A stretch of 50,528 nucleotides of DNA from Octopus sinensis (Eukaryota). Below the pieces are notes generated by a model, which was not told where the DNA came from, did no database searches, and was given only the letters and a program-made list of their open reading frames with translations. Positions 13,650-50,159 of the stretch are shown here, in pieces. The first letter of the stretch is position 1. Each line of letters opens with the position of its first letter. The position numbers and the translations under genes were made by a program. The stretch covers positions 1 through 50,528 of the forward strand of contig NW_021834269.1 of the NCBI RefSeq assembly GCF_006345805.1, read 5' to 3'.

Positions 13650-14005
13650 TCAGTCATTTGACTGCGGCCATGCAGGAGCTCAACCTTCAGTCGAACAAAT
13701 CGACTCCAGGACTTATTCTTTGTAAGCCTGGTACTTATTCTGTCGGTCTCTGTTGCCGAACCTCTAAGTTACGGGGACATAAACACATCAACTTCAGTTG
13801 TCAAACGATGGTGGAGGACAAACACACATATATATATATGCGACGGGATTCTTTCAGTTTCCGTCTACCAAATCCACTCACAAGACTTTGGTCAGCCCAA
13901 GGCTATAGTAGAATACACTTGCCCAAGGTGCCGCGCAGTTGGACTGAACCCGGGACCACGAGGTTAGTAAGTAAGCTTCTTGCCACACACCCACTCCTGT
14001 GCCTA
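13650..14005 (-). mobile_element. SINE with tRNA-like head (paralog 45115-45460, +)
   Basis: B-box-like CCGGGTTCAGTCC; conserved body ggcaccttgggcaagtg...ggtagacggaaactgaaagaa. Confidence 0.7.
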
Positions 14006-15089
14006 TAATGTATGTACTTGTCTCAGGATGATCTCAGGATTATCCTGTTGATAATTTTAATAATTATTTTAAAGTCTAAACAAAGCAAGTTAAGACATTA
14101 AACATACAGGTTGAAGGTTAGTTCTATTATCTGGTATTTCAACATTTTAGGGTCAGAACCTGTTCTTCTGGGAATCTACAGAGAAAAGTTGTTGATAAAT
14201 GATGTCTCTGCTTTGTAGTGTGTGTATGAATGGCTGTTTTCTCTAAAATTGTTTTGTTTAAATCGGATATGTTTTAAATATGCGAGCTACACTTGTTAAT
14301 TAAAACTGCTTCTTTTATCCTTAAGTTCCCATTCTTTCTTTCTGTAGATTCAGTGGCAACTTTGACGTCTTGGGTGCAGCATTTGCACAATTTTTTTTTT
14401 TTGACAGAAGAAGCGTTAGCATAGAAATGTTCTTGGATCTTTTCGGCAGTTTTTTTCTAGCTGTGTCATATGAAATTGTCACCCATAATTTGACCCTAGT
14501 ATCAATCTATTGCATTTCAATCTGTTTTAGAGTTAGGGTTAGGGGTGGGGGGAAGGATATCTTTTTTTTCTTCAGAAATGTAAATAAACCCAATCTGTTT
14601 CTTAAACGAGGGAATATTCATACAGCATGGAATGTTTTCACCTCAATAGATGTCATTGATTGGTTGAAATTGCAGAAATTGAAGAAAAAAAAACAACAAA
14701 TATCTTACAAACTATAGAATTTTCTCAATAAAGCCAAGAGAAAAAGATGTTTTATAAACACATTCTACCAGTATACGAAGTTTAAAAGTGTTTAGTTAAC
14801 TAGAAATTATTTTAAAACGCTGCTGTTCAAACCGAAAAGATCCATGTTCTTTAATGCTTATGAGAACCTTCATATTTCACGTTGAAGTATTGGTCGAGGG
14901 CCAATCTCTCTGCGAACACTTCGGTTTCGATGCCTTTTCTAAAAGCCTCATCTAACTTCCTCACTAGCTCTCCTTTTACTCTGTTTCTTTCAACTGCAAG
15001 TCCTTTGCAAGTCTGTTCTGATGGTCCTTTTCAGGGTGAACCACTATTTATAGTTGACAATTGCCTCAGTCAACGGCTTAACTAATTCA

Positions 15090-15665
15090 CTAATCCGGTC
15101 TCTGAAATCTTTGTGCACCGACGAAGGCGCGTTCAGCTTCCGGTAACCGGATCCATGTCTATGAAGCCTAAGTGGCTCGATTGTGGTCTATGTAGTTGAC
15201 TATTTTCAATTGTAGAAAACCTATACTATCCGTATCTGAAGGATACCCTATCGCAATACGATCTGCATGATCCGATGTGGTTTAACCAGCTCTACACTGG
15301 CACATAAAGGAAATTCAGTCGATACCTGTCAGACAGTTGGAATCATTTGGGCAAGTTTGCGGAGCTTTCTCACCCTCCTCCCCTATCTGCTAAGCCTACA
15401 AAGTCCCACCATACGTCTAAAATCCATTCTAATCTTCCACTAATACTAAGGAGTGGAACATTCCCAGGAAAGTTCCAGATGCCTGAAGAAACCTGGTCCT
15501 CCTGCTCCAATCGGGGCATAGACAGCAACTATGCCCTTCGATGTCAGTCGCGATCAGTACCACCGACTTACTTTCTGGATCCAGGAAGAACATCCGTATT
15601 GCAAGATCCAGATTTTTCCGAACCATCATGGCGACTCTACCTCCCGGACGACTTAGAGATGCATA
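15090..15665 (-). mobile_element. L1/Tx1 APE endonuclease fragment in the intron of copy A (paralog about 43470-44030, +)
   Basis: GGRVAMMVRKNLDLAIRMFFLDPE...LVLVED*NG matches degenerate APE motifs. Confidence 0.75.
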
Positions 15666-15970
15666 CACCGAGAGCATCGATGGATGGATGAATGTGCATC
15701 CAGGCTCAGCAGTTGAGTAGGAACAACAGAATAAAACAACTACCCAAGTGTGAGTACGATCCGTTTCGAGTGGGGCCAAGCAGTGTCCGTCCACTCAACA
15801 TCATTGGAAGTAGACAGATACTCATGTTGTAAAGGGATCAGAATAATGGAGACTGAAATAACCGTGATTTCCAATCGTACTTCTGCAGCAGACGGAAATA
15901 TCTACACCTTATTCCGTATTGTAACTATCACAGATTATACAGCAAAACAACAACTGAAATAAACACTTAC

Positions 15971-16057
15971 TCCTGCGGCTACCGTTGGACCATGGCGTGC
16001 TAATGCACCTGCAGCAGGCTTGAGAGCTTCAAAAGCAATGCGTGCAACTGGAAGCAT
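15971..16057 (-). CDS. Micro-protein copy A, first coding exon (MLPVARIAFEALKPAAGALARHGPTVAAG); whole exon is 15971-16071 including 14 nt of 5'UTR
   Basis: Minus strand reads polypyrimidine tttttgctcttctttcag|gtgaagttttgaatATG...GCAGGA|gtaagt. 87 nt = 29 codons, phase-0 donor. Splice sites and ATG are conserved in the paralog at 42809-42903. Confidence 0.8.
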
Positions 16058-17432
16058 ATTCAAAACTTCACCTGAAAGAAGAGCAAAAATAGCGTGAATA
16101 GTAATTTCTTAGAAGCAGAGTGTATGATATGTATATGAATTGACTATTATATAAATAAATTGATTAATCCGTGTATGTATTCTCCATTTTCTTTTTTGTA
16201 TTGTAATGAATTTTTTTTCCTCCAATAAAGAAAAGGTGAAAACATCTATAACGGCAACTGGAATTCCGGATCTTTTCCTTTTGAACAGCACATGTCTCAC
16301 CCTAACCCTTACCCTAACACTAACTCTAACACTAAATCTAAAATTGATTGAAATGCTAGGGCTATAATTATACCAGGGTTATAATTATGGGTGACAATTT
16401 CATACGACACCGCTACAAAAATGGGATTTTTTTCTAGCGGTGTCAAATGAAATTGTCACCTATAATTATAACACTAGTATCGATCTATTGCATTTCAATC
16501 TGTTTCAGGGTTAGGGTTAGGAGTGGGGAATGGGTATCTTTTTTTTCTTCGCAAATGTAAATAAACCCAATCTGTTTCTTAAACGAGGGACATATTCACA
16601 CACAGCACGGAATGTTTTCACCCCAAATGGAGGTCAGCGATTGGTTAAAATTGCCGAAATGCTTGAAATTAAAGTGGAAATATCTTACAAACTATAGAAT
16701 TTTCTCAATAAAGCCAAGAAAAAATGATGTTTTATAAACACATTCTACCAGTATACGAAGTTTAAAAGTATTTAGTTAACTAGAAATTGTGTTGACATCT
16801 GCCATTCAAAAGGAAAAGATCCGGAATTTCAAAAGGGTAAGGTACGAATATCAAAGACGAACCAACGATAAACAATGGATCATATTCGCATCTACAATTT
16901 CCAGTATCATTAATCGATATAGAGCTAAACTGGTGTACACTTTGATAAAATATATCTCTGGGAAAGGACAACCTCTTTCCATTCAAACTTATATATATGT
17001 CTGTGTGTGTGTGTAGTGGAGGCGCAATGGCCCAGTGGTAAGGACAGTGGACTTGCGGTTTCCATTCCCAGACCGGGCGTTAGAGTTTTCATTGAACAAA
17101 AACGCCTAAAGCTCCACGAGGCTCCAGCAGGGGATGGTGGCAACCCCTGCTGTACTCTTTCATCACAACTTTCTCTCACTCTTTGTTTCTGTTGTACTTG
17201 TATTTCAAAGGGCCAGCCTTGTCACACTCTGTGTTACGCTGAATCTCGCAGAGAACTACGTTAAGCGTACACATGTCTGTGGAGTGCTCAGCCACTTGCC
17301 CGTTAATTTCCCGAGTAGGCTGTTCCGTTGATCGGATAGTCCTCGCAATTTCAGCTGATTAATCTTGAGATTGTCCCTTTTTGTATCATCTAGTTGTCTG
17401 GATGTTTTGCGCTCTTGTTCCATTTTGTATTT

Positions 17433-23559: not shown

Positions 23560-24360
23560 ATCTATCTTGCATTGAATTTACGCATTGCGTTTGCATATAT
23601 GCATACATACGTGTATATAATTACATATGTATACCTTTGCACACATCATCTACACACAAATGTATATATGTATGTATTTTTATTTCGTGATTTCTTCCAA
23701 TAGAAAAAGAATCACTTTCTAACCTAGATCTATGGCTCCTTCATTGGAATTTCAACATCAGCAACAATATATTTTTGCATGGATTTGTGTATATGTGCAG
23801 GATTTGGAGTCAGTGTGTGTGCAGATTTGTTCATTTGTTTAATATATGTATTCTCATGCATATAGAGACATACACTTATATACTTCAATGATAAACTTCT
23901 GGAAAGTTTTACAGATTTTTACAGTTTCAGAGAGAGCTTGTCTCTCTGTAGTCTTCGAATCAGCTGTAGTCTTCGAAGAAGTGAGTCTGGTGATGTGCCG
24001 AGCAATTGTTGAGAAACAAAACTGTAATGTCAGCGGTGCAGGAACATAGGAGGAACCTAGTTTCAATGTGGTTGGACTACAAGAAAGTCATCTTTTCCTT
24101 TTGAACGGCACTTTGTAACATAATTTCTAGGTAACTAAAAAGTTTTAAACTTCGTATACTGGTAGAATGTATTTATAAAACATCATTTTCTCTTGGCTTT
24201 ATTAAGAATTTTCTATAGGTTGTAACATATTCCATCTAAAATTTCTTGCATTTCGGCAATTTTAACCAATCAATTACCTCCATTGACGTAAATAACATTC
24301 TGTGCATAATGAATATGTCCCTCCTTTAAGAAACAGATTGGGTTTATTTACATTTGTGTA
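23560..24360 (+). repeat. Direct duplicate of 6312-6712 fused to 8512-8890
   Basis: Colinear identity, junction at 23960-23980. Confidence 0.9.
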
Positions 24361-24600: not shown

Positions 24601-25480
24601 TGTAATGCCTTGTCATCCGAAAATGTATAATCATCATCAAATTTTTAATTGACCCCAAATGTATTATTATGTAAAATCATTCGTGATTGTTTTGTCCATA
24701 GTTGTTGAACCGAAATGGTGACCAAAGAAAAAGCAGTTGGCTTTTTGGCCCTCGACTGATGTAAATCGTGTCCCTCTCGCCTGCCTCGCTCGCCACTCAC
24801 GCCTGAAATAAATCGCTGTATAAACTTACACCTCTTGTCTGACCGTCATTTCAACTACTGCTTTCGTCTGTCCAGTTTTACTGATTACGACCACAGTCCT
24901 TTTCAGGGCTATTTCAAGTCTGATCTGAATGCGATAACAGTCCTTTTTAGGACTATTCTTGGATCGGATCTAATTGCGACAACAGTCCTGTTAACGGCTA
25001 CCCTCGGATCAGACCAGAAGTAGTGGCCAAGAATCATACCCGCTACAATTGGTGACCCCGACGTGATAGGAAGCGAACAGCATATCAAGAATCAGCATGG
25101 ACACGCCAAAACCAACAACAGAGGCCGATATACCAACCACGCAAGCAGCTTTAACCATGAAGGTCACGGTTTTTTGGTCCAACGACCCAGCCCTGTGGTT
25201 CGTCCACATAGAAGCACAATTCGCCGCGAATAGAATCAAGCACGACTCTGCAAAACTCACGCACATCATTGGGTCAGTCCCACCAGAAGTATTGGCTGAG
25301 GTGAGAGACCTAGTCATGGCACCGCCAGGCACGGTGTCGTACGAAGCTTTCCGCAAGGAATTAATAATGCGAACTACTGCATCACAGCAGAGACGACTCA
25401 ACCAACTCGTGTCTGCAGAAGAGTTGGGGGACTGAAAACCGTCCCAACTGCTGTGTAGAATGAGACAGCGGATGGAGGAA
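24601..25480 (+). mobile_element. Truncated Ty3/Gypsy element: 5' LTR (about 24601-25047), tRNA-Trp PBS (25050-25067), gag N-terminus
   Basis: TGGTGACCCCGACGTGAT is complementary to the 3' end of tRNA-Trp. ORF 25097-25435 has the gag-type motif FW..DPALWF..IEAQF...EELGD(R)KPSQLL, with an in-frame stop; cut off by an RTE 3' end. Confidence 0.85.
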
Positions 25481-28321: not shown

Positions 28322-28607
28322 GTGCAGTCACCGGAAGTACTTGCACGGACACCGGAAATACATCTGCCATCACCAGAGAAAACAAAGCAACTACCCCCAG
28401 CGACTTGCCTGACCTTTCATTGGACAATAGCTACCTACCTGCCATTCTATTGGACACTGGCTAAACATCACTGCTGATATTTTTGTATAAATAGACATCA
28501 TAAATCGCTGTAAAGGCAGTTGGCTTTTTGGCACATGATATACTGCGTGAGTTATTTATCTGTCTGTTTTTGAATATTTTGAGTACGAATCTGTAAGAGT
28601 TGAACTT

Positions 28608-30019
28608 TTGTTGAAAATTGTTGTTTTTGAACGTCTGGTGTTTAACCAGAAAAATATTGTTATTCCCCTCCGTAAGGAGGGGAAAGTGCGACACATTGTA
28701 ACACAACAAAACAAAAAAATATATATATTGTCTGAAAAAATGTTTGAAACATTCTTTGACGAAGGTTCGCCTTCTAGAGAAAATGTAGTAGGTTCGCCTA
28801 CATTGAAATTTGTGAAAAATACGTCTTCAAAAGAAAATGTAATGGATTCGCCCAAATTGAAAGTTGTTGAAGGTCCGCCTTCTGGTAAAGCTGTGAAAAC
28901 AGACAAAGTTAGGGAAGGTTCGCCTTCCAAAGGAGGAAAAAGTGAAACAAAAACTTACAACTTTGCAGCCGCCGCAGGAAGAAAAACTGAAGAAAAAAAA
29001 ATGGAAGAGATCGACTACGAGATTTATAAAACCATGTTCACAATGGAGGGGAACAATATAAAAGCAACCCTCCCACAAGACATTAAAAACAGTACTCAAA
29101 AAAGAATAATAATAAATAAATCATATATTATAAAAGAACAGAAAATAGATAAAGTGACGAAGGAACAAGCGGAAAAATGCCTTCAACCAATATGGCGCGA
29201 TGTAGACTACGTGACGTGGGGGAAAAGGTACACCACAATAGCGGTGTACTTCAAAGAGGAAGAAATGGCTAAAAAGCATTCACTAACCCCGATAAAAACC
29301 AGCGACATCATCCTTCTACCTTCATATTTGGGGCGAAGGACATCCAAAATACGGATAGAAGATATCACCCAGAAATAGAGGTGAAGTGGTTACTTCCAGC
29401 CCTATTAATAGGGCTGGAAAAGAAAATAAATGTAATAAAAATCACTAAAATACAAAAAGAAAACTGGAGAGGCCAGACGCTGCAAATAACAGTACAGGCG
29501 GCCCCAGAAACTCTGGAGGAGGTCCCGGAGAACATCAATTTCGACGAGGAAATTAACTTGCGGGTGGTGGTGGAGGGGCGAAAGCCGAGATGCTACGAGT
29601 GTGGCGAAAAGGGCCACATCCGTATGGAATGCCCCACCCGCAAGAAAGAGGAAGAAAAAAGAAGGGCAGAAGAAGAGGAGAAGAAGAGAAAAGAGACGGA
29701 GGGAACAAAACAGAAGGAAGATGAAAATGCCTTCACACTGGTGAGGCAAAAGAAAAAAAGAAAGAACGATGACGTAAACCCACCCATCCCAAGTACAAAC
29801 AAAAAGAAAACAAACACACAGGGGGGGAAAATCTACCCCACCGAACCACGGTTCCCCACAAAAAGAAAAAAAAGAGAAGACTCCCCCCAGCCCAACCCGA
29901 ACCACCCCCACCCCAGTGCTGAAATTCCCTCCCCTCCCAAACTACTCCCCGTGTTCCCCCCATCATACTCCCCGCTGTCCTCCATCACCCCCACTAGCCC
30001 CCCCCCCCAAAGAAAATAA
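28608..30019 (+). pseudogene. L1/Tx1-clade LINE ORF1, frameshifted near 29370
   Basis: ORFs 28608-29378 and 29381-30019 abut with a 1-nt frameshift; CCHC knuckle CYECGEKGHIRMEC; Lys/Pro-rich tail; directly precedes an APE ORF. Confidence 0.8.
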
Positions 30020-30190
30020 TAGAATTCGTCTCTATAAACAAAGCAAATGACAGGTTAACAAAACAAATGGACAATATCCCAACGGCACACAAAATCCAGA
30101 CACATTGGGTACTCCCTAAAAATGTCGAGGTTTACAAAATCGACAGGATGAATTATAATATTATAAGAGAGGAATACCCGGGGGACATTA

Positions 30191-30760
30191 ATGGTCCGCG
30201 ACTCGACCTTCACGAGTCACTATACAAAGCGGACTTCCCCCCACGACCAACAGAAAAGAAAAACAACTAAAAGGTCGGTAAGGTCTCGTATTTATGTAGG
30301 GTGTATAGATGTACATGGCCTGATGTCGAACTGGAAGCAAGGGCGCCTCCTAAATGACATCAGGTCACGAGATTTAGATGTTGTTGTTGCCACAGAAACC
30401 TGGTTAAAAGGGCCAAGAGATCTGCTCCCGCTGCTCGACGGTTACGAGGGAATTATCTCTCCGAGCTGTTCGTCCGGCGGAAGCGGGGTGTTGGTCCTGT
30501 GTAAAAAGAACCGGGTTTCTGAGAAAAAGTTGATTTTTTCAGATCCAGAAGGTAGGCTGGTCGTCGTTGATTTGACGTTCAGTAGTCGTAAGACAATCAG
30601 GCTGGTTGCGATTTACGCACCCTACAAGATTGGGGAACAAAGTGATTATTTTCGGAACCTTGGAAAGTTTCTGAGTACATCGCACCCTTTAGTAATTTTA
30701 GGAGATTTCAACACAATCTGCGATGCGCGGGTAGACTGTGAAATTTCAAGCCTATTTTAA
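30191..30760 (+). pseudogene. L1/Tx1 ORF2 N-terminus (apurinic-like endonuclease), 3'-truncated
   Basis: APE motifs DVVVATET, GSGVLVL, DPEGRLVVVD, AIYAP, LVILGDFN. Confidence 0.9.
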
Positions 30761-35086: not shown

Positions 35087-36544
35087 TATTTATCCTAAAT
35101 ATACATTCCTGTCCCTTTCCATTTTATTCTTTGATCCCGTATGTTTATTTTTTGTTGTTGTTGTTGTTTGTAGGAAAGCATAGGAGTATTAGGGACGTGT
35201 GTGTGTGTGGGGGGGTGTATGTGTGTGATTAGGGCTTTGCATTCATGATCGTAAGATTGCAGTTTCGATTTCTGGACTGGGCGAGGCGTTGTGGTCTTTA
35301 TCAAAACATTGCCTTTCATGTTTGTCGGATCCACTCAGGTGAGAAACAAAGGGTAATCCTGCAATGGACTGCCGTCACGTAAGGGAAGGGTGTGCGAGTG
35401 TGTGTGTGTGTAGGGGAGACAGATCGTTTGTGCATATGTCTTGTGAAAGATATTTTATCTTTTTCACATATGCACACTCTCAACACATACACATATATGT
35501 ATTTGTGTGTGTGAGTATGTATTTATATATGCACACACACGTGGACGCATATGCAGACACACACCCATCTGTCTACACAGAGGACTGGTTTGGAACAGAG
35601 ATAAGTGAAGAATGTCACAAATAAGATGGACAAGGCAAATGAAACTGGCTGAAGGTGAAAATGTCTGACCAGAGGTCGCTGATGGAAACCTTTCATAAGC
35701 AAAGACTAATTCAGAACTTGGTGCCACATTCAGACATTTGAGGGGTGAAACGCTTGTTATCTTGAAAAACCTGATAGTGGTACGAAAGGCTTCTGACATT
35801 GTGATCGGTTCAAAAGAAGGGCTCGCAATACCCTTGAATAGCTTCCCCAATTTCTGCAAGGGTCCAAACCTTTCTGATGCTTCTTCCACTTATATGTATA
35901 TGATATACTTCATCAGACCCGTGCTTCATTCTGCCCAAGTCAAGTCACTGAAACTGATGAAAGTATTTGCGAATATATTTTGCAACACAGTTTTATATTG
36001 AATCAAAAACCCCAACGGTTTAATGATTTGTATTTCTTTTAATAATGATAATTATTTTAATATCAATTAATTAGTTCGTAAGGCGGCGAGTTGCAGAATT
36101 GTTAGCAACACACCGGCTTAAATGCTTAGCGTTATTTTGCCCATGTCTACGTTCTGAGTTCAAATTTCCCCGAGGTTGACTTTGCTTTCATCCCTCCGGG
36201 GTCGATAAACTAAGTGTTAGTGAAACATTAGGGTCGATGTAATCAACTAGTCCCCTCCTTGCAATTTCAGGCTTTGTACCTTAAGGTAGAAGGATTATTT
36301 TAATTATTTGCTGTCGTTTTTTAATTTACCATTTGTATGTTATTATTTTACATTATTGTTCCATATTTTCTTTAATCTTCGTCGTCGTCCACCTCCTCCT
36401 CCTCTCCTTCCTCTTCGCAGGTGTAGGTCATAAGCTTCAATCTGTGTGGGGACCCACTTTGTTTTCATATTAATTCACTTACTGCTACACTCATATATTT
36501 GTCTTCCTAGCGTTCTCTTTCTTCCTTTCCCCACTCTCTTTTGC

Positions 36545-37252
36545 TGCTAATTGCTGGTCTGTCTGTCTGTCTATCTATCTATTTATATCTATCTATCTAC
36601 CTATGTATGTATTTATTTATGTATGTATGTATGTATGTATGTATGTATGTATGTATGTATGTATGTATGTATGTATGTGTGTATTTATGTATGTATGTAT
36701 GTATGTATGTGTGTATTTATGTAAGTATGTATGTACTTATGTATGTACGTATGTATGTATGTATGTATGTATGCATGTATGTATGTATGTATGTATGTAT
36801 GTATGCATGTATGTATGTATGTATGTATGTATGTGTATTTATGTATGTATGTATGTATGTATGTATGTATGTGTGTATTTATGTATGTATGTATGTATGT
36901 ATGTATGTATGTATGTATGTATGTATGTATGTATGTGTGTATTTATGTATGTATGTATGTATGTATGTATGTATGTATGTATGTATGTGTGTATTTATAT
37001 ATGTATGTATGTATGTACTTATGTATGTATGTATGTATGTATGTATGTATGTATGAATGTATGTATGTATGTATGTATGCATGCATGCATGTATGTATGT
37101 ATGTATGTATGTATGTATGTATGTATGTATGTATGTATGTATGTGTGTATTTATGTATGTATGTACTTATGTATGTATGTATGTATGTATGTATGTATGT
37201 ATGTATGCATGCATGCATGTATGTATGTATGTATGTATGTATTTATGTATGT
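36545..37252. repeat. (TCTA)n/(TATG)n microsatellite, about 700 bp (only about 120 bp in the left arm at 22992-23110)
   Basis: Direct reading. Confidence 0.98.
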
Positions 37253-37900
37253 AGGCTCAGATGGTTGGTCATCTGGTCAGGATGAAGGATTCAAGGATGC
37301 CAAAACAACTCTTTTATGGAGAGTTAGCTAAAGGAGAATGACCTCCACATAAACTAAAAAAGAGGTATAAGGACTTGCTGAAGGTTTCCTTAAGAGATGG
37401 TTGCATCTCTCGTGACACATAGGAAGACATAGCTATTGATCGTAGCAGGTGGAGAAGGATTGTGCATGGGGAGACAGCCACTTTTGAGAAATCTCGAGTT
37501 GCACATGAGAAAGTAAGGAGGGATGTCAGGAAGGGCATCGCTGTTACACTTCCAGAAGGGAAGGGTCTTCCTTTGATTCTGACATACAATGTCTGTGCAA
37601 GACCCTGCCTCAGTAAAGCTGGACTCATGAGTCATCTTCGTAGTCATAAAGCAAGACAGATGATTGACAACCCGGCCACTGGTGGTGGTGTAACACACCA
37701 TACTAATCATATCTGTCGGGCATGTGGAAGAGAGTGTAATTCGGCAGGAGGACTTAAACGACATGCAAAGGTACATGAAGCCCAGTTACAACTACAACCG
37801 GCTATTACCGGTAAAGGTTTCAGTTGCCTTTCCTGTACAAGACATTGTAGATCTTTAGCTGGGCTAAAAAGTCACATTCGATCACAGCACCAGTAACAGT
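37253..37900 (+). mobile_element. RTE-clade LINE C-terminus carrying three C2H2 zinc fingers (left-arm copy about 22330-22990, -, internally deleted)
   Basis: RWSGHLVRMKDSRMPKQLFYGEL-type RTE motif, followed by ORF 37462-37896 with three C-x2-C-x12-H-x3/4-H fingers. Confidence 0.8.
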
Positions 37901-38019
37901 TAAGCTTCGTGCAATGGCCATACTCGATAACGAGGGAAACCATAATGTAATGTATGTATATGTATATATAAACTTACTTGGAAATGGATGCGTGGCGTTC
38001 AATCAAATAATAATATAAA

Positions 38020-38095
<76 letters not shown>

Positions 38096-39991
38096 ATATA
38101 TGGGTACATGAAAACAGTTGGGTACGCAAACAACGAGAGAAACAAATATATATATACTAGCATTAAACCCGTCGTTGCGGTCATAGTGCTAGTGCATGTA
38201 TATATATGTATGTATATGTGTACATATTACATGTACATCTATATATATACATCTACACATAAAATACAAAATACAAAGTTATATCTTGATATCGCTAGTG
38301 ATAACAATACTCAAAATATATAACAGACTGGAATTGTTAGCCCGTCTCTTGTAATTTTGATCAATTGTATCTTGTCCTCCCTCTTGTATAGAAGTGTGGC
38401 TACAATCCAGCCTACCACTACTTTTGGTGGGGGGATGCATTTTTAATTTTTTTCCTGGACGTCCTACGTCCCAGATATAAAACTAGAAGTAAAATATTTC
38501 CACTTTGCAAATTCGAGTCGAGTACTCCCTTGCACGCTCCGTTGACTCGAACCTTGCTTCTATTGTGGCGAATTTACCGCCTCTGATTAGATACGTTTCA
38601 TAGTCGCACCAAGACACTTTTCGAAGGTGATTTCCTTCATGTTTTCAAATCTTTTTTCTCTACATTGTATACTTTATAGACAATAGTCTTTTCTTTAATT
38701 TAATTTTTTATTCCATTTCTGCACACTAATTTTATTTTTAATTTATTCCCATTCATGTGAAGCAACTTATTCAAGTTCAAATCATTGATGCAATTTTATA
38801 CCAATTGCTATTTTTACTTTTGTTTTGTTACTTTAGTTTGATTTTTATTATTACTTACTACATATAATTCAATTGTTATTATTATTTTTATTGTTAAAGT
38901 GAAAGTATCTGACATAAAATAGAGAAACGTTTTTGTTTCACTTTTAACACGTAATACTGAAATAGTGGAGAAGATATGATATTGCTATGGGCTCGCCCTA
39001 GGCAAAAAGTTCAACATCTTTTTAGCCGATTACACTCCCCGGACCCTAAGTAAGGCATGTGTAAAATTTGAATGGAATTGGTTGTGTAGTTCTCAAGTTT
39101 TAGGGAAACACACAGACAAACAGACAGACACACATTCTCAGTTTTATATATATCAAGATATATATTAATTAATTTAGGGTAGCAAAAAATTCAATAGAAA
39201 TTATTTTGCCACCAGCGGTCTAGTGAGAAAGAGGAAATAGTCAGAGACTATGAATAAATTCAACAACAATTGAGGAACGGCTACAATAGGCCGTTCGACC
39301 CACTAGAAATAGCAGCCAGGGCTCTAACCGCAAATAGTAGTAATTCCGAAATCAAAGGAAAAATTAAAAAGACATTTACCCTGTTCTGCTTTAGACAATG
39401 CATTGTTTCGGCGTTTTTTAATGGTAAACCAGCCTGATTAAATTAAATTAAACTTAATCAAGTCAATCTTCCAAAAGGCCAACGCGCTCATCAGTAAAGG
39501 AGCCAGAAGGGACAGAAATTACACGAGGCAGCTACCTTCATGCCTAGGTAATATCTGACCTAAAATCTTCAAAATCATCGTACTCGTGCCAACTTTTGAA
39601 ATGTAAGGAATGGGTTTTACACACACACACACACAGAACATCTTTATTTCACACCTTATAATGTGCCTCAGCATGGCCGCAGCTCTGAGCTGAAACTAGA
39701 AAAAATATATATATATATATATTTATATTTAAAATTTATAAGTTTAAATTATTTAAATAATTTTTTAATTTTAACTTTAATTTAAATATTTTAATTTGGA
39801 ATTTTATATTTTTATATTTTATTTTTTTGGATTAATTTTATTTCTATGTTTGGCTTATGATTTTCACGTTTGATTTGCCTAATAGTGGTTTTATCTCTAA
39901 TTTAATATAATATATATTTATACTATAAAATTGGATTTAATCCTAAATCTAATTTTTTCCCTGTAAGTTTGGATTTGCTCCCTAATATTAT

Positions 39992-40026
<35 letters not shown>

Positions 40027-41029
40027 GTTTAAATATTTGTTGTGCAAGATTTTTTATATATATATATATATGTAAGAGAATAAAGTGTACGTATGCCGCT
40101 ATCATTAGCTACTACACGCATTTTTTTCTCTCCTTGTTTTTTTCTGTGTATCTTTCTGTCAAAGAGCATAGGCTTGAAATGTAAAAGACTTTTTCTATTC
40201 CTGAGCACTATACTAATACATTTGTTTGTTTGTACTCCACCTGCCGTCGTCTTTTGTTTATTTTCGTAAACTTTCCCTTTATATATATATATCAAATAAA
40301 ATATAAAATGGGACAAGAACGCAAAATATTCGGACAACTAGGTAATACAAAAAGGGACAACAAAACATCCAGATAGGCGATACAAAAAAACAAGGACAGG
40401 TCATTTGAAGCCTTTTATCCTCAGTCAAGAAACAGATCATCCTCGCAATTTCGGCTGATTAAAATTGAGATTCCTCCAATCTGGCTAGCCCCAAGGAAAA
40501 ACTAAGCTAAGAGATTCCTTGGAAAAAAGCATCAAATGTATACGAAAACAAGGACGGAAAAAAGACGATTTACACGAATAAAATACAAAAATAGAATAAA
40601 AATAATAATAATAATAATAAATAATAACAGGACATAACAACAGGTGTCTTTCAACTGGGAACAAATTGAATTCAGCTGGCATGTGTGGATATGAAGCCTT
40701 ACAGCAGAGGGAAGAATATCGATGTGCAGTGACCATGGTCAGACGCAAAAGGGCTAGCAGTCTGGCCTATAGGGCACGTTAGAAGAAGAGAGAGAAGAAA
40801 AGAGAACAAAAGAATTAAGGAGGGGGAGAAGAAGAAGAGAGCAAGAGCGAGAGAGGTTGTAGAAGCAGATAGACAGAAGAATCAAGGAGTGGCGAGAGAA
40901 AAAGAGAGACAGGGACATAGTGAAGTGAAAAATGAGTAAAAGGCAAAGAAATGTGTGAGAGATGGGGGGGGGAGAAAGATAGAATGAAGCTGGAAAGGTT
41001 GAAAAAGTCGTACAAAATTTAGTGGTCGC

Positions 41030-41102
<73 letters not shown>

Positions 41103-41600
41103 AACTGTAGTTGTGTGAGTGTCTGTCCCCTTCGATTTAGATTCCTAACTACTCCCACATTTTGCGGTGCAGTTTAATTAACCAAATTCGGGTATCTTAT
41201 AGTCGTGATTCATATCGAGCCCGTCTGAGTATTAGCGCGCGTCTACGATGAGTCTACGATTTAAAAAATAATTTAACACCATTTTTTTATTCCATTTTAA
41301 TGCATAATTTTTCGTGTGTCGATGGCGGCGGAGTTGGCGTCCATGGTCCCACCTGCACCTGTTTGCTTCTCCCCCTTCTTCCCTCCCTCGTGAAGCTGTG
41401 GGGAAGGGAGTGTAAGGAAATCAACGTCGTAAAGCGTTGTCAAGGAGACCAGCGTTCTTTTAGAACAACGACTTCATGGCTTGAAGACACCAAAACAAAA
41501 ATGGCTAAGAAAGCCCGAATTTATAAGGGAAGTAACTCTCTAAAAATGCTTATATAGTTATTTCCCTTACAAACCCGAGCATCGCCGGGCGATACTGCTA

Positions 41601-41642
<42 letters not shown>

Positions 41643-42067
41643 CATAATAAAATACAAAAGGGAACAAGAGCGCAAAACATCCGGACAACTAGATGATACA
41701 AAAAGGGACAATCTCAAGATTAATCAGCTGAAATTGCGAGGATGATCCGATCAACGGAACAGCCTACTCGGGAAATTAACGGGCAAGTGGCTGAGCACTC
41801 CACAGACATGTGTACGCTTAACATAGTTCTCTGCGAGATTCAGCATAACACAGAGTGTGACAAGGCTGGCCCTTTGAAATACAAGTACAACAGAAACAAA
41901 GAGTGAGTGAAAGTTGTGATGAAAGAGTACAGCAGGGGTTGCCACCATCCCCTGCTGGAGCCTCGTGGAGCTTTAGGCGTTTTCGTTCAATGAACACTCT
42001 AACGCCCGGTCTGGGAATGGAAACCGCAAGTCCACTGTCCTAACCACTGGGCCATTGCACCTCCACT

Positions 42068-42104
<37 letters not shown>

Positions 42105-42822
42105 AGTTTGAATGGAAAGAGGTTGTTCTTTCCCAGGGATATATTTTATCAAAGTGTACACTGGTTTAGCTCTATATCGATTAACGATACTGGAAATTGT
42201 AGATGCAAATATGATCCAATGTTTATCGTTGGTTCTTCTTCGATATTCGTACCTTACACTTTTGAAATTCCGGATCTTTTCCTTTTGAACGGCACATGTT
42301 AGGGTTAGGGTTAGGGGTGGGGAAAGGGTATCTTTTTTCTTCGCAAATGTAAATAAACCCAATCTGTTTCTTAAACGAGGGACATATTCATACAGCACAG
42401 AATGTTTTCACCCCAAATGGAGGTCAGCGATTGGTTAAAATTGCCGAAATGCTTGAAATTAAAGTGGAAATATGTTACAACATAGAGAATTTTCTCAAGA
42501 AAGCCAAGAAAAAATGATGTTTTATAAACACATTCTACCAGTATACGAAGTTTAAAAGTATTTAGTTAACTAGAAATTGTGTTGACATGTGCCGTTCAAA
42601 AGGAAAAGATCCGGAATTCCAGTTGCCGTTATAGATGTTTTCACCTTTTCTTTATTGGAGGGAAAAAAATTTATTACAATACAAAAAAGAAAATGGAGAA
42701 TACATACACGGATTAATCAATTTATTTATATGATAGTCAATTCATATACATATCATACACTCTGCTTCTAAGAAATTACTATTCACGCTATTTTTGCTCT
42801 TCTTTCAGGTGAAGTTTTGAAT

Positions 42823-42903
42823 ATGTTTCTAGTTGCACGCCTTGCTCTTCAAGTAGCTGCACGTGCAGTAGTACGCTATGCTCCAAGGATAGTCGCTTCG
42901 CAC
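42823..42903 (+). CDS. Micro-protein copy B, first coding exon (MFLVARLALQVAARAVVRYAPRIVASH); whole exon is 42809-42903
   Basis: tttttgctcttctttcag|gtgaagttttgaatATG...TCGCAC|gtaagt; 81 nt = 27 codons, phase 0. Confidence 0.8.
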
Positions 42904-45281
42904 GTAAGTGTTTATTTCAGTTGTTGTTTTGCTGTATAATCTGTGATAGTTACACTACGGAATAAGGTGTAGATATTTCCGTCTGCTGCAGAAGTACGAT
43001 TGGAAATCACGGTTATTTCAGTCTCCATTATTCTGATCCCTTTACAACATGAGTATCTCTCTACTTCCAATGATGTTGAGTGGACGGACACTGCTTGGCC
43101 CCATTCGAAACGGATCGTACTCACACTTGGGTAGTTGTTTTATTCTGTTGTTCCTACTCAACTGCTGGGCCTGGATGCACATTCATCCATCCATCGATGC
43201 TCTCGATGTTGGGGGTTGACTTGATTTCTCTTCTGTGGGTCTTATGAATAGCAAAGGACCACGTTTCGGACTTCTCCCACTACAGGACATAGACCGCTTC
43301 GCTCAACAAACAAACAAACAAACAAATAAGCAGCAGCAGTAGCAATAACAATAACGACAAGAACAACGAAATGAACTGAGCAACAATCTGGTGCAACGGC
43401 TTGGAACAGCACTAAACTTCCCTTTGCTAGTGCTACCAAGTCCTCTCTTCAGAGAGTATAAGGTGTATGCATCTCTAAGTCGTCCGGGAGGCGGAGTCGC
43501 CATGATGGTTCGGAAAAATCTGGATCTTGCAATACGGATGTTCTTCCTGATCCAGAAAGTAAGTCGGTGGTACTGATCGCGACTGACATCGAAGGGCATA
43601 GTTTGTCTATGCCCCGATTGGAGCAGGAGGACCAGGTTTCTTCAGGCATCTGGAACTTTCCTGGGAATGTTCCACTCCTTAGTATTAGTGGAAGATTAGA
43701 ATGGATTTTAGACGTATGGTGGGACTTTGTGGCTTAGCAGATAGGGGAGGAGGGTGAGAAAGACCCGCAAACTTGCCCAATGATTCCAACTGTCTGACAG
43801 GTATCGACTGAATTTCCTTTATGTGCCAGTGTAGAGCTGGTTAAACCACATCGGATCATGCAGATCGTATTGCGATAGGGTATCCTTCAGATACGGATAG
43901 AATAGGTTTTCTACAATTGAAAATAGTCAACTACATAGACCACAATCGAGCCACATAGGCTTCATAGACATGGATCCGGTTACCGGAAGCTGAACGCGCC
44001 TTCGTCGGTGCACAGAGATTTCAGAGACCGGATTAGCGAATTAGTTAAGCCGTTGACAGAGGCAATCGTCAACTATAAATAGTGGTTCACCCTGAAAAGG
44101 ACCATCAGAACAGACTTGCAAAGGAATTGCAGTTGAAAGAAACAGAGTAAAAGTAGATCTAGTGAGGAAGTTAGATGAGGCTTTTAGAAAAGGCATCGCA
44201 ACCGAAGTGTTCGCAGAGAGATTGGCCCTCGGCACATTCTTCAACGTGAAATATGAAGGTTCTCATAAGCATTAAAGAACATGGATCTTTTCGGTTTGAA
44301 TGGCAGTTTTTAAAAATAATTTCCAAGTAACTAAACACTCTTAAACTTCGTATACTGGTAGAATGTGTTTATAAAACATCTTTTTCTCTTGGTTTTATTG
44401 AGAAAATTCTATAGTTTGTAAGATATTTTTTTTTCTTCAATTTCTGCAATTTCAACCAATCAATGACATCTATTGAGGTGAAAACATTCCGTGCTGTATG
44501 AATATGTCCCTCGTTTAAGAAACAGACTGGGTTTATTTACATTTCTGAAGAAAAAAAAGATATCCTTCCCCCCACCCCTAACCCTAACTCTAAAACAGAT
44601 TGAAATGCAATAGATTGATACTAGGGTCATAATTATGGGTGACAATTTCATATGACACCGCTAGAAAAAACTGCCGAAAAGATCCAAGAACATTTCTATG
44701 CTAACGCTTCTTCTGTCAAAAAAAAAAAGTTGTGCAAATGCTGCACCCAAGACGTCAAAGTTGCCACTGAATCTACAGAAAGAAATAATGGGAACTTAAG
44801 GATAAAAGAAGCAGTTTTAATTAACAAGTGTAGCTCGCATATTTAAAACATATCCGACTTAAACAAAGCACTTTTAGAGAAAACAGCCATTCATACACAC
44901 ACTACAAAGCAGAGACATCATTTATCAACAACTTTTCTCTGTAGATTCCCAGAGAACAGGTTCTGACCCTAAAATGTTGAAATACCAGATAATAGAACTA
45001 ACCTTCAACCTGTATGTTTAATGTCTTAACTTGCTTTGTTTAGACTTTAAAAAATTATTAAAATTATCAACAGGATAATCCTGAGATCATCCTGAGACAA
45101 GTACATACATTATAGGCACAGGAGTGGGTGTGTGGCAAGAAGCTTACTTACTAACCTCGTGGTCCCGGGTTCAGTCCACTGCGCGGCACCTTGGGCAAGT
45201 GTATTCTACTATAGCCTTGGGCTGACCAAAGTCTTGTGAGTGGATTTGGTAGACGGAAACTGAAAGAATCCCGTCGCATAC

Positions 45282-45317
<36 letters not shown>

Positions 45318-45524
45318 TTGTCCTCCACCATCGTTTGACAACCGAAGTTGGTGTGTTTATGTACCCGTAACTTAGGGGTTCGGCAACAGAGACCGACAGA
45401 ATAAGTACTAGGCTTACAAGGAATAAGTCCTGCATGGCCGCAGTCAAATGACTGAAAAATGCAGAAGAATATGTAATTTACGCAGTTGATATATAAACAG
45501 GGCTAGATTAGCTGTCTTTCAGTA

Positions 45525-48188
45525 TGTTACGAAATGTGAATATCTTCTCTTGCACTTTCGGGGTGCAAGAAGCAATCACCTTCCGTTGCTTTAATATCCA
45601 GATTCTTACCAGTCAGAAACAACAAGACGCAGACGTAAAATATATATATATACTTTATTCTCTTATGACAGTAACAAATAAGTGGTATATCTGGGTATCC
45701 CTTTGGTATAGATGTGTCAGAGCTGAACTTTATCGCTGTAGAATTTACAATGTTCAAATGCTAACGACACAACCATGATGGCGTCCGGAACAGGGAGAAG
45801 ATGTGGTCTGCAACAATTTGGTTAAAGTCTTCAGCCGACTGCTATCAAATACGGACAGAGAGAAAATATACGTCCGTTGCCTTCAGCCGCTGTGCCTCAA
45901 GTCACTGCTTGCTGCTGCTAGTGGTCAAACGTTTTACGCCCCCCTTGCCTCTTTTCTAAGGGTCGCTTTTTCCTAGCCAATCAGCTAATTCCACGATAGC
46001 AATATTCCCTCTTCTGGTGATGAAAACACGCGCGAATCAGAAAAGGGCGTTGCGCGCGCGCGCTGTTGTATAGCGTCACTACAAAGGCTCCCCCACAAGT
46101 GCGTAGCACGACACAAAATTCCTTGTAGTGACTTTAAAACTCAAGGTGGATACCAGATAACCAAATAGCACACAATATAATAAAAATGGCAAAATTTACA
46201 TCATACATAAGAAATTCACCAAAAGGAAAAAATACTCAAAATGAGCAAAAATCAAAAGTGCATGCGTGAATAAGAATAGAGCCTTCCGCTGAAAGGAGCG
46301 GAGGGAAAGCAAAACTCACAGTTAATGAACCTAGGCGAAGTAAAATCCAACTCCTCTAAAGGTAGTTGATCCTGCGAAATAGCAGTTAAGTCAATTACTG
46401 CAGGAGAGGAAATGGAATCGACAGATAGATCGCCAGTAACACAAAGGCAGACAGTGCAAGCATGCTGGTGTGATGCGCGAGACAGATAATTTTCTCTGTT
46501 AATTACGTGACCAACAGGGGTCTAACAGGGAAAAATAATTACGCCTAAACATGGGCGCAGCGCATGGGAACATCCGACGTTCTATGAGTCGGGAAAAGAA
46601 TTAAGCTAACGCAAAGGTGTTGCAAAAACAAGGCAGTACACGTGCAAAGCAAGGGTGCATGAATGCAATAGGGCTTGCCAGACCGAAAAACAGCAATGAA
46701 TATGCCAGTGGTTAATGTAGTAAGGCTGAGCTGCCAGCCAGTGCTTGAGCGATTATATGCCTCGTTCGTACAGGAACAAAAGCGTGACATGCTGGCGCGT
46801 TATAATGGACAAACAACCCTCTCTATGTATACGTGACCGACCTAGGGTCTTACAGAAATTAGGTGTGTCCACAAAGGCAAATTAGCATGGAAAAACAAGC
46901 GAGAAAAGCATGTGTGACGTATGTATGTGAGAGAGATAGCATTTATGTGTGTGTACGTGTGTTCGACAAAAATACAACAAGGTGAATGCGAGCAAAAAAA
47001 ATAAAAATACAGCGCATAGGAAAAAGTCTCTCAGGGCTATTTCAGACAAGATGGAGTTATTTTTACCAGTCCGTAATAGCCTGATACACAATAGCAGTTC
47101 GTTCTGTAACAGAATGTTGAAATCACAAATGCAGATGCCGATTGAACACATATCGTGTAGCGGTTGTAGCTTCGATGCTGTGACAGGTTAAATCGTTACA
47201 GAAGAATCTCGCAGATAGACTGTGCTGTTAATCCTTGGTGTGCTATGCACAAACAGCGTGTACGCTAAAGTTCCGCGAGTTGCTATGTACATCTTGTGGA
47301 GGTCGACGGTGTTGAAAGGCGACGGTGGTGGAGGCGACTGTATTGGACTTGAGACACATTGTTCTTAGTGGTGATGGCGACGAAGATAACGACGACGTGA
47401 AGTTGAAAGACGACGATGGCAAAGAAAAAGCATCGATGATATGAATGCGTCCGTCATTATTGTTGAAGAATAAGAAAGGCTCCTTCTATAACTGTTTGAG
47501 GTGGCCGGAAACAAATCGTCGAAAGATGAATGCGTAGAGTTTATCGTGTTCAGACCTGGCAGAAAAACTGGATTTTTTTTTTGTTGTTAAGTGATCTCTG
47601 GTTTGAGACCAGAATCACGTCGGGGGTCACCAGTGTTACGACCAGTGAAATATCTTCTCTTGCACTTTCGGGGTGCAAGAAGCAATCACCTTCCGTTGCT
47701 TTAATATCCAGATTCTTACCAGTCAGAAACAACAAGACGCAGACGTAAAATATATATATATACTTTATTCTCTTATGACAGTAACAAATAAGTGGTATAT
47801 CTGGGTATCCCTTTGGTATAGATGTGTCAGAGCTGAACTTTATCGCTGTAGAATTTACAATGTTCAAATGCTAACGACACACCAAGATGGGCGTCCGGAA
47901 CAGGGAGAATGTGGTCTGCAACAATTGGTTAAAGTCTTCAGCGGACTGCTATCAAATACGGACAGAGAAAATATACGTCCGTTGCCTTCAGCCGCTGTGC
48001 CTCAAGTCACTGCTTGCTGCTGCTAGTGGTCAAACGTTTTACGCTCCCCTTGCCTCTTTTCTAAGGGTCGCTTTTTCCTAGCCAATCAGCTAATTCCACG
48101 GTAGCAATATTCCCTCTTCTGGTAATAAAAACACGCGCGAATCAGAAAAGGGCGTTGCGCGCGCGCGCTGTTGTATAGCGTCACTACA
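45525..48188 (-). mobile_element. Non-autonomous Ty3/Gypsy-type LTR retroelement inserted in the intron of copy B
   Basis: Two LTRs (45525-46083, 47634-48188) with TG...CA ends; 4-bp TSD AGTA (45521-45524, 48189-48192); tRNA-Trp PBS on the minus strand (47613-47632); PPT-like GGGGGAG next to the other LTR; no pol ORF; absent from the left arm. Confidence 0.9.
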
Positions 48189-48516
48189 AGTAGATTAATG
48201 GAAAACACTAATCGCTATTAGAAGATTACTGTAGTCTCATCAGAGGAGTCTACATTATTATGACTAATCACAAGGAAATCTATTTATATACTCATCAGTT
48301 ACAGTAATTACAGAAATCTGTGGCTGCTAATTCGCATATTGTATGTGTTAGTACCTTAAATGTCAGTGGCCTGTCAACAGGGCCTGTCATTCATACGGTA
48401 CCAAGGGATTATATAATACACGTAACCTGTATAGTAGCTTTCTATCTTCATAGGGGAGGGAGATAATTCAAAGTTTCCCTTTAGAGATGTTGATTCTCTC
48501 TTTTTATTTCTTTCAG

Positions 48517-48651
48517 TTGGGGCTCATGGCAATCGAATACGCGGTTGAAAGAAAAGACGAAGAGGAAAGTGAAGATGAATGCAGTGAGGATAGCAGAAAG
48601 AAGAAAGGAAAGAAAGAAAAAAAAAGAAAAGAAACCAAAATCTTAATTTAG
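48517..48651 (+). CDS. Micro-protein copy B, terminal coding exon (LGLMAIEYAVERKDEEESEDECSEDSRKKKGKKEKKRKETKILI*)
   Basis: Same acceptor context as copy A (ctctctttttatttctttcag|TTG); 135 nt in frame to the same ...ATC TTA ATT TAG. Spliced product is 71 aa. Confidence 0.8.
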   Translation: MGLMAIEYAVERKDEEESEDECSEDSRKKKGKKEKKRKETKILI

Positions 48652-49433
48652 GATGAGGAATCGAGAGAAAGCTTCGAGCTTTGCCTCACTGTATTTGTTT
48701 TCATTCTCTTCAAGCACACACACACACACACACACACACATGCACACACACACACATGCAACACAACACACATGCACACACACACACATGCACACACACA
48801 CACACACACAAACATACGCAAACACACACACACAGACTTATTCAGACATTATCACATCGAGCTACACACATACAGCTTTTTTTTCTTTTTTTTACCTAAC
48901 CACAGTCTCAAGAACAAATTAAATCTTAACAAATAATGAAGACGTAATGTAATTAGCATCTAAAAAGTATGAATTAATCGATTCATCGCTGTGTTGTTGT
49001 TTTTGTCGTCCAATCTACAAAAGCTGCGGTCATAAAAGTAATGATACTTCCCAAATATTACAGCCTTCACGAGGTTGGGGCCATTTATCTTTGACTTAGC
49101 TTCCCTCACTCCTCTGATCTACTCCTTCTCAATTTTCACTTTCATTTCTGTAGTTAGTACTCTGTCAGATTTATATACTCCTACATACTTATAACTCTCT
49201 CCTTCTTTCACTGATTTTAATGTCTGGTCATCTGGTAATTGGATGCCTTCGTGTTGACTACCTGTCCCCTTCTCGTGACTAATATTACGCAATTATCTGT
49301 GCCAAATTCCTTGCTTGTATCTTTTCTGAAGAGTCTTACAGTCTGTATTAAAGAATAAATCTCTTTCACTTTTAATAAAAAAGCTTCAAGTTATCCATTG
49401 AGAGCAAATGGTTAATTTTTCTCTTACTATTTC

Positions 49434-49515
<82 letters not shown>

Positions 49516-50159
49516 TTTCTTCTTTCAATTTTGTTTCCCATTTCTTGCTGAGTGGCTTCCAACACCTAGTGCAAAGAACTCACTGTATTCCTTGGTAGGT
49601 CATTAAATAAACACACCAGATTGTTTATTTACAAAGTCATGTGACAGAAAAAGGGAAGACAGAGAAAAATGGGGAAAAAAGGAAAAAGGAAAAAAAAAAA
49701 ACAGTGTCTGGTTTGGTCCAGATCTTCAGCTGGAGAAGAACTGAGAATAGGTGACGAACATGGAGATCAATGTCACGAAGAAATGGGTTAAGACAAAGCT
49801 ATCCCTGAAGGGTCTGGCAAAGTGACAAATGCACACATCGTCTCCGTCATATATTATCACCTGACCCCCGTGCCTTACCCAAATCCATCTCGGACCAAAC
49901 TGGAGTGCGCGTGCTTCTGCTTTCTGTGGAAGGAACGTGTTCCACTTGTCAGGTGCTCTGTTCGCTGTCAACACTCACTGAATGGAGGGCCGGGTTTGCA
50001 GTGGCTGCTGATGTGCAGACATGCACTGAGGCTGCGACATCTCCAGAGCTTCCTAGACGGTGAGCAGGGGTGGTCACCGTTTGTCAGACACGATTTCCCA
50101 CAGCTCGTCTCTTGTCTCAGCTGCAGTCCTGGATCAAGCATAGACCCAGGCAGGCTGGG

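Follow-up and report, generated by a model that had tools for sequence, protein, structure and literature searches.

A small predicted gene of Octopus sinensis, present in two copies on a single scaffold, raises the question of how coding exons can come to differ at most of their amino acids when the intron between them is almost unchanged. The 50,528-nt stretch of DNA analysed here, hereafter the window, is the whole of contig C10740 (NW_021834269.1); it is AT-rich and is packed with microsatellites and transposon fragments. Self-comparison of the window revealed a large inverted duplication with arms of ∼12–14 kb, and the two copies of the gene, termed A and B, lie in opposite arms. Comparison of these copies with those found elsewhere shows that replacements in the N-terminal module of the protein have been fixed 7–18 times or more faster than silent changes, independently in every copy since ∼2% neutral divergence. 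Judging from the sequences, the copies probably represent a lineage-restricted microprotein family under extreme recurrent diversifying selection.

Structure and divergence of copies A and B

Copy B was located on the + strand at 42823–42903 and 48517–48651, and copy A on the − strand at 16057–15971 and 13252–13085. The exon borders are canonical. The predicted structures are as follows.

42795–42822, + strand: pyrimidine tract with CAG, a candidate splice acceptor identified by alignment, then the 14-nt 5′ leader GTGAAGTTTTGAAT
42823–42903, + strand: copy B coding exon 1, 27 codons beginning with the ATG and bordered by the GTAAGT donor, MFLVARLALQVAARAVVRYAPRIVASH
42904–48516, + strand: copy B intron, 5613 nt, 2.1–2.8% substitution divergence from the other copies
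48517–48651, + strand: copy B terminal coding exon, 44 codons and TAG, LGLMAIEYAVERKD (hypervariable), then EEESEDECSEDSRKKKGKKEKKRKETKILI
15971–16057, − strand: copy A coding exon 1, 29 codons, MLPVARIAFEALKPAAGALARHGPTVAAG
13253–15970, − strand: copy A intron, 2718 nt
13085–13252, − strand: copy A terminal coding exon, 55 codons and TAG, ATDIVAKRVFARIH, then DSKEEESVSEEESEVEWCELCRKKESKEKKKKKEKETKILI

An earlier note on this DNA had claimed, from a manual alignment of A with B, that the divergence is restricted to the exons and falls on the first two codon positions, and its counts were reproduced. The first 14 codons of the terminal exon (48517–48558 against 13252–13211) align without gaps and contain 18 differences, distributed 8/9/1 by codon position, with 13/14 residues changed and 13/14 third positions identical. 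The 24 gap-free codons of exon 1 carry 13 single-base replacement changes and one synonymous change, besides two in-frame indels of 9 and 3 nt, and the first 190 nt of the intron carry two differences. Divergence in the surrounding DNA was similarly counted: there were four differences in the 240 nt before the ATG (the last 14 nt being identical), four substitutions in the ∼326 nt before the acceptor and none in the 50 nt after the stop, and the introns of A and B differ by 2.1–2.4%. The borders of the hyperdivergence coincide exactly with the ATG, the donor, the acceptor and the end of the coding sequence; in exon 1 of copy B, variation begins at codon 2 and ends at the donor site.

When the 38 cleanly aligned N-terminal codons were taken together, differing sites numbered 16/14/2 at codon positions 1/2/3. 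The hypervariable coding sequence (32/114) was more diverged than the intron (57/2664) at Fisher p = 1e-23, and positions 1 and 2 were more diverged than position 3 at Fisher p = 6e-5. Position 3 (2/38) and the intron (57/2664) were not significantly different (p = 0.2), that is, silent sites have changed at the intron rate and the excess does not reflect a local rise in mutation rate.

An acceleration this large, limited to ∼120 nt per exon pair, might be ascribed, with selection playing little or no part, to a targeted or programmed hypermutation process in the exons, such as an editing enzyme, error-prone repair or templated diversification, and mutator ideas were reportedly proposed for conopeptides by Conticello et al. 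in 2001. A process operating on DNA cannot, however, spare third bases in register with the reading frame. All 12 substitution classes were also present (37 transitions, 24 transversions), and neither an A-specific bias nor an excess of C-to-T or A-to-G changes was seen; CpG decay would strike third positions too, and genome searches found no template or donor copies. Exon hypermutation is, on these data, barely credible. Among its particular forms, CpG decay and ADAR-type, APOBEC-type and adenine-specific mutagenesis were rejected as a misfit with the substitution spectrum or the frame register. A diversity-generating retroelement was also rejected, there being no extra template copy and no adenine-specific bias; the retroelement pieces in the window are ordinary retrotransposons.

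Over the 8411 aligned bases of the two arms the mean mismatch was 3.4% and the median 42-nt window differed by 2.4%, and both coding exons ranked as the second and third most divergent 42-nt windows. The top window, 38995–39052, was considered as a third hypervariable exon ending in GTAAGG and rejected, as one 149-nt unit is there aligned to a non-equivalent unit of arm A; its differences, read from the alignment, are without codon periodicity (5/3/6). This 149-nt unit is single in arm B (38962–39110) and is a tandem pair in arm A (21402–21251/21614–21402) and in the contigs C26 and C9024 described below, the two units being identical save for a cluster of ∼15 changes in ∼55 nt, ending at GTAAGG. 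The remaining hot windows between the arms are a transposon edge and microsatellites.

Further copies in O. sinensis and O. vulgaris

Genome searches covered the 2,719,151,902-base O. sinensis assembly of 13,516 contigs. Whole-genome DNA searches with each exon and its flanks identified only five places, which were B, A, a duplicate of A on contig C9024 and two tandem copies on a chromosome-scale contig, C26.

C26 3903428–3900368, − strand: copy C26a, in tandem with C26b
C26 3932902–3929569, − strand: copy C26b, in tandem with C26a

The coding sequence of copy A exon 1 is identical on C9024. The 2.7-Gb assembly consequently contains four distinct copies, all with intact reading frames and the same borders. 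These four share a practically unchanged 5′ leader, donor, acceptor and 3′ flank, and each has its own coding sequence between them; the 14-nt leader is unchanged in all five places, with A at −3 from the ATG. Introns differed by 1.7–2.8% (substitutions) in all copy pairs. In the first 14 codons of the terminal exon, 10/13/3 of 14 sites were variable at positions 1/2/3 among the four copies, and 4.2% of intron sites were variable. The third positions of these codons read G G C G A C A C G T A A A C, with 3/56 exceptions. An in-frame ATG (MLILSFYFFQ...) situated 30 nt before the acceptor of the terminal exon was rejected, as it is not conserved in C26a and C26b.

A phmmer search with protein A against 1.84 billion representative proteins yielded a single match, CAI9741335.1 (E = 9.7e-9), a 73-residue 'hypothetical predicted protein' from Octopus vulgaris, in which exon 1 is joined directly to the terminal exon. 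This independent annotation backs the model of two coding exons. Word-indexed homolog searches with protein A, CAI9741335.1 and C26b returned nothing besides CAI9741335.1, and a six-frame search of the O. sinensis genome with CAI9741335.1 gave no further members.

The O. vulgaris locus (L039) is colinear with C26 3913251–3890892 at 97–98.5% identity. A Pex2/Pex12-family (peroxin RING) gene, 98.6% identical between O. sinensis and O. vulgaris, is located ∼7 kb downstream of C26a and of the O. vulgaris copy (L039 19799–22953 and C26 about 3894000–3891000); the window ends before any equivalent. The colinear flanks and this anchoring gene identify the O. vulgaris copy as the positional ortholog of C26a. 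Its intron is 1.55–2.4% diverged from those of the O. sinensis copies, its exon 1 differs from that of C26a by two changes, both of which are position-2 replacements, and its terminal exon is yet another variant, with 13/14 third positions kept. A separation of 2.5 million years is given for these two sister species (PMC10700109).

All five genes, B, A, C26a, C26b and the O. vulgaris copy, possess two phase-0 coding exons, near-identical flanks and intron, a variable N-terminal module, an acidic Ser/Glu stretch and a Lys-rich tail. It is likely that the gene family is small, young and restricted to the common-octopus lineage, with at least one further copy in O. vulgaris.

The recurrence of the pattern bears on whether the open reading frame (ORF) is non-functional and whether, in a scaffold that is rich in repeats and partly redundant, faulty assembly, misalignment or chance produced the divergence. 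The scaffold is unplaced, 50 kb long and transposon-rich, the assembly holds redundant haplotigs and has a BUSCO duplicate rate of 5.2% (PMC10700109), and the O. sinensis proteins are unannotated, with an AlphaFold model of low confidence. Against this, the structure and its pattern are seen again in four distinct copies spread over three contigs, one of them chromosome-scale, and in the independent assembly of a second species, the 14-codon alignment is free of gaps with all but one of its third positions identical, the exon borders are canonical and the coding indels are in frame. An artefact is thus very improbable.

Probable selection on the N-terminal module

For B against A over 38 codons, the method of Nei and Gojobori gave nd = 31 of N = 84 replacement sites and sd = 1 of S = 30 silent sites, corresponding to a replacement rate (dN) of 0.51 and a silent rate (dS) of 0.034 (Fisher p = 2.5e-4). 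A pairwise maximum-likelihood codon model was written for this analysis and applied to the pairs among B, A, C26a and the O. vulgaris copy, with a likelihood ratio test (LRT) against omega = 1. Omega was 18.1 for B–A (LRT p = 2.5e-5), 7.1 for B–C26a, 17.1 for B–O. vulgaris and 13.7 for A–C26a, and was unbounded for A–O. vulgaris and C26a–O. vulgaris, in which there were zero silent changes. Omega was at least 7.1 in all six pairs, with LRT p values from 1.6e-5 to 1.2e-3. The claim of extreme positive selection made from A and B therefore survived the addition of homologs, dN/dS being far above 1 and 6/6 pairs significant.

In the 14-codon block that opens the terminal exon, private changes at the 28 position-1 and position-2 sites numbered 3–6 per copy in all five copies, with private intron change of 0.3–1.0% per copy. 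As every copy has private changes, the acceleration has been recurrent in all lineages and was not a single burst.

Exchange among copies and the age of the exons

Informative intron sites back conflicting groupings of the copies (B with A, C26a with O. vulgaris, A with C26b and B with C26a), from which it follows that exchange among copies occurs; the grouping given by exon 1 is likewise at odds with that given by exon 2. A 252-nt intron segment (43210–43461) is present in B and C26b and is missing from A, C26a and the O. vulgaris copy, and this shared indel, which cuts across the exon groupings, is further evidence of exchange.

Exchange of this kind is what would be expected if the family were old, with exons that diverged long ago, introns and flanks kept alike by gene conversion and amino-acid differences shielded by selection. 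Third-position variability in the 14 codons (3/14) is, moreover, somewhat above the intron figure of 4.2%. Old exons nevertheless predict diverged third positions, and position 3 is statistically like the intron; conversion tracts are unable to equalise each third base and yet leave the two bases between different, and the tract ends would need to match four exon borders exactly in every copy. The earlier note had named replacement of an exon pair by conversion from an old, distant paralog as one outcome that would overturn its reading, but dS is not raised, third positions diverge no more than introns and no copy matches the exons of B. With silent sites undiverged and no donor among the four genomic copies, an old donor paralog is unlikely.

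An estimate of age that is separate from the intron substitutions was provided by a long terminal repeat (LTR)-type element in copy B.

45525–48188, + strand: LTR-type element, 2664 nt, inside the copy B intron, with LTRs at 45525–46083 and 47634–48188

The element has TG..CA ends and is bordered by a target-site duplication, AGTA, at 45521–45524 and 48189–48192; its interior (∼1.55 kb) contains no long ORF. It is private to B, being missing in A, C26a, C26b and the O. vulgaris copy. The LTR pair is ∼1.7% diverged, a value similar to that of the B–A intron, which indicates that the separate history of B is about as old as the A–B split and that the intron clock has not been grossly reset. With all of these points considered, an old family maintained by conversion is improbable.

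The predicted protein and the evidence for coding

The predicted microprotein has 71–115 residues, is highly charged and consists of four parts. The first is the hypervariable N-terminal module of ∼40 residues, rich in alanine and arginine. The second is acidic, rich in Ser and Glu, and consists of an 18-nt unit (GAA GAA GAA AGT GWG AGC) in variable repeat number; read from the codons, C26a's own diverged repeat units differ chiefly at positions 1 and 2. A short Cys motif follows, which is WCELC or CCEHC in A, C26b and O. vulgaris and CSEDS in B and C26a; CxxC is thereby found in 3/5 copies, and both Cys codons switch together between copies. The fourth part is a Lys-rich tail encoded by an A-run.

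Indel lengths respect the reading frame. Exon 1 is 81, 87, 87, 30 or 87 nt long in the five copies, all multiples of three, and the coding indels between B and A (9, 3, 27 and 6 nt) are multiples of three in 4/4 cases, against 0/17 short intron indels (p = 1.7e-4). Both shifted sense frames were rejected as coding, since stop codons are read in one copy or other, and an antisense frame was set aside on the reasoning that it could not explain a rate above that of the introns.

Searches of Pfam-A matched B and A to no family, and C26a and C26b gave sub-threshold low-complexity matches only (best 16 bits against a cut-off of 30.8). An AlphaFold2 model from a three-sequence alignment had a mean predicted local distance difference test score (pLDDT) of 56.8 and a predicted template modelling score (pTM) of 0.20; it consists of one long helix and is uninformative. 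The architecture is not that of a conotoxin, as the N-terminus is variable from the second codon onward, conservation of the cysteines is lacking and hydrophobicity of the signal or anchor type is found only in C26b. The absence of a conserved signal peptide weighs somewhat against a secreted toxin of the conotoxin kind.

Several points weigh against a protein family under recurrent diversifying selection. The tests rest on 38 codons, the O. sinensis gene models are predictions from sequence alone and the O. vulgaris gene model may itself have been predicted ab initio. A collection of 15 billion proteins, queried by exact look-up, contained none of the four O. sinensis proteins, and retention of an open frame is not by itself significant (simulation P ∼0.22). 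Changes in A-run length shift the last codons among three frames (48600–48651, 13136–13085 and the C26 copies), giving the C-terminal ends ETKILI*, KPQS* and NHNLNLG*, each with a different stop codon, although the lysine run outlasts any frameshift. The N-terminus is strongly hydrophobic only in C26b (2.2 in a 19-residue Kyte–Doolittle window; at most 1.24 in the others), and the variable module has no conserved structural scaffold, which would be odd for a binding domain. Intron exchange may mean that intron divergence understates the age of the copies. Finally, A and B may be paralogs, divergent haplotypes or the product of a fold-back misjoin, the second contig confirming arm A only.

The inverted duplication and surrounding elements

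The arms of the duplication, and a dispersed repeat of the window, were mapped as follows.

36401–50158, + strand: arm B of the inverted duplication, colinear matches to arm A at 91–96% identity
11579–23254, − strand: arm A of the inverted duplication, colinear matches to arm B, interrupted by insertions
42298–42612, 44283–44593, 8623–8938, 9176–9489, 24090–24356 and 16428–16831: copies of a ∼315-nt dispersed repeat

Window positions 1–28420, which include all of arm A, match C9024 31544–59974 at 99.63% identity across 28.4 kb, and arm A has therefore been assembled independently. From this near identity it follows that the two stretches are redundant scaffolds or haplotigs. The centre of the palindrome is at ∼29.8 kb in the window and C9024 terminates near there; the inverted junction to arm B consequently rests on this scaffold alone, and a fold-back misjoin may have produced it.

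The spacer between the arms (28551–30760, + strand) contains pieces of a non-LTR retrotransposon, with a CCHC zinc-knuckle ORF and an endonuclease/exonuclease/phosphatase domain. A DUF7041 ORF is located at 25070–25435 and a C2H2 zinc-finger ORF at 37423–37896. Copies of the ∼315-nt repeat are 83–90% identical and are found in both orientations; one copy is directly upstream of exon 1 of B and another is in the intron, forming an inverted pair that flanks exon 1.

Proposed explanation

The copies probably arose by segmental duplication in units of ∼13–30 kb, and segments are still exchanged between copies. Natural selection would then favour amino-acid novelty in the N-terminal module, which amounts to recurrent diversifying selection, and the likeliest cause would be that this module contacts a partner that itself changes fast. 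The predicted proteins have no conserved signal peptide, a Lys tail resembling a nuclear-localisation signal (NLS) and an acidic tract as in nuclear proteins, and they are encoded in young palindromic and tandem duplications like those of ampliconic germline genes. These features suggest a conflict inside the cell, possibly in the nucleus or the germline, more than they do a secreted toxin; our leading guess, a tentative one, is an intracellular or reproductive conflict. The classes that the earlier note proposed, gamete recognition, immunity or self-recognition, venom and drive, are all candidates on these data.

Taken further, the family could supply the protein side of a conflict, intragenomic or reproductive, that is still under way and is peculiar to common octopuses, a proposal that we regard as unlikely. 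The protein would in this case act, for example, in the germline, in sperm chromatin or in drive, or would restrict the abundant neighbouring retroelements. Its N-terminal module would be selected to differ from its sisters and ancestors, and the conflict would promote local palindromic and tandem duplications. Were this true, it would be the first such system in cephalopods and among the fastest-evolving animal proteins known.

Recurrent diversifying selection on a small octopus protein would matter in several ways irrespective of the partner. Because the gene is very small and restricted to one lineage, the family escapes standard annotation and scans based on homology. Its ∼40 variable residues and 4–5 copies, in two sister species, form a compact system for the study of extreme diversifying selection and its coupling to segmental duplication. 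Unannotated functional microproteins can, furthermore, be exposed when young duplications are compared arm with arm for divergence that is frame-periodic and limited to coding sequence.

Comparison with known systems

Exons that outrun introns more than 10-fold are rare, and they repeatedly mark arms races, in venom, fertilisation, host–pathogen interaction and genomic conflict. Literature searches on the accession CAI9741335.1 and on octopus hypervariable families found no relevant paper and none that describes the family, and no such cephalopod system appears to be described in the literature. The pattern is ordinary in type and exceptional in degree, in a gene and a lineage that are unstudied.

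Venom toxins are similar in being young multi-copy families in which coding sequence outpaces introns. For the crotaline snake phospholipase A2 (PLA2) isozymes, studied by Nakashima et al. in 1993 and 1995, and the conotoxins, studied by Duda and Palumbi in 1999, coding sequence is said to evolve faster than introns and untranslated regions, with dN/dS above 1. Toxins, however, keep a signal peptide and a cysteine framework, whereas the octopus protein varies from codon 2 and has its Cys motif in 3/5 copies. Abalone sperm lysin is another reported example, its exons evolving, according to what is ascribed to Lee, Ota and Vacquier (1995) and Metz et al. (1998), far faster than its introns and under positive selection. 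Lysin is a single-copy, folded, secreted protein of 16 kDa with VERL as its partner; the octopus protein is multi-copy and without a predicted fold. The octopus family is homologous neither to these toxins nor to lysin.

The SPANX genes, cancer/testis genes of hominids, share more of the gene structure. They are small two-exon genes for charged proteins of ∼100 residues with an NLS, and Kouprina et al. reportedly found in 2004 that their coding sequence evolves faster than the intron within recent segmental duplications. There is no homology to the octopus genes, and in SPANX silent and replacement rates are both raised, whereas in octopus only replacement is raised. The Sp185/333 (SpTransformer) genes are sea-urchin immune genes, reportedly described by Buckley and Smith in 2007 and Miller et al. 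in 2010. They resemble the octopus family in being small two-exon genes in tight clusters with similar flanks and bordering microsatellites, a repeat mosaic in exon 2 and exchange among copies. Sp185/333 differs in having a conserved leader exon and diversity by element mosaics; in octopus, diversity is by point replacement at positions 1 and 2 and exon 1 is hypervariable, and there is no homology.

The closest analogue in behaviour is NPIP/morpheus, the gene family of the ape LCR16a core duplicon. NPIP exons are reportedly several times more diverged than the introns, a finding attributed to Johnson et al. in 2001. There is no sequence similarity between the families; NPIP has 8 exons, compared with the 2 coding exons and 71–115 residues of the octopus genes, and the octopus family belongs to a mollusc and is clustered, not interspersed. 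In a core-duplicon family the copies are dispersed by the duplicon itself; the octopus duplications are ∼2–4% diverged in units of ∼13–30 kb, with only 4–5 copies on three contigs. In both cases a gene family inside young segmental duplications has kept its open reading frame, and NPIP has been described as showing among the most extreme positive selection on record, as an excess of replacements, together with variable C-terminal amino-acid repeats (PMC7419210).

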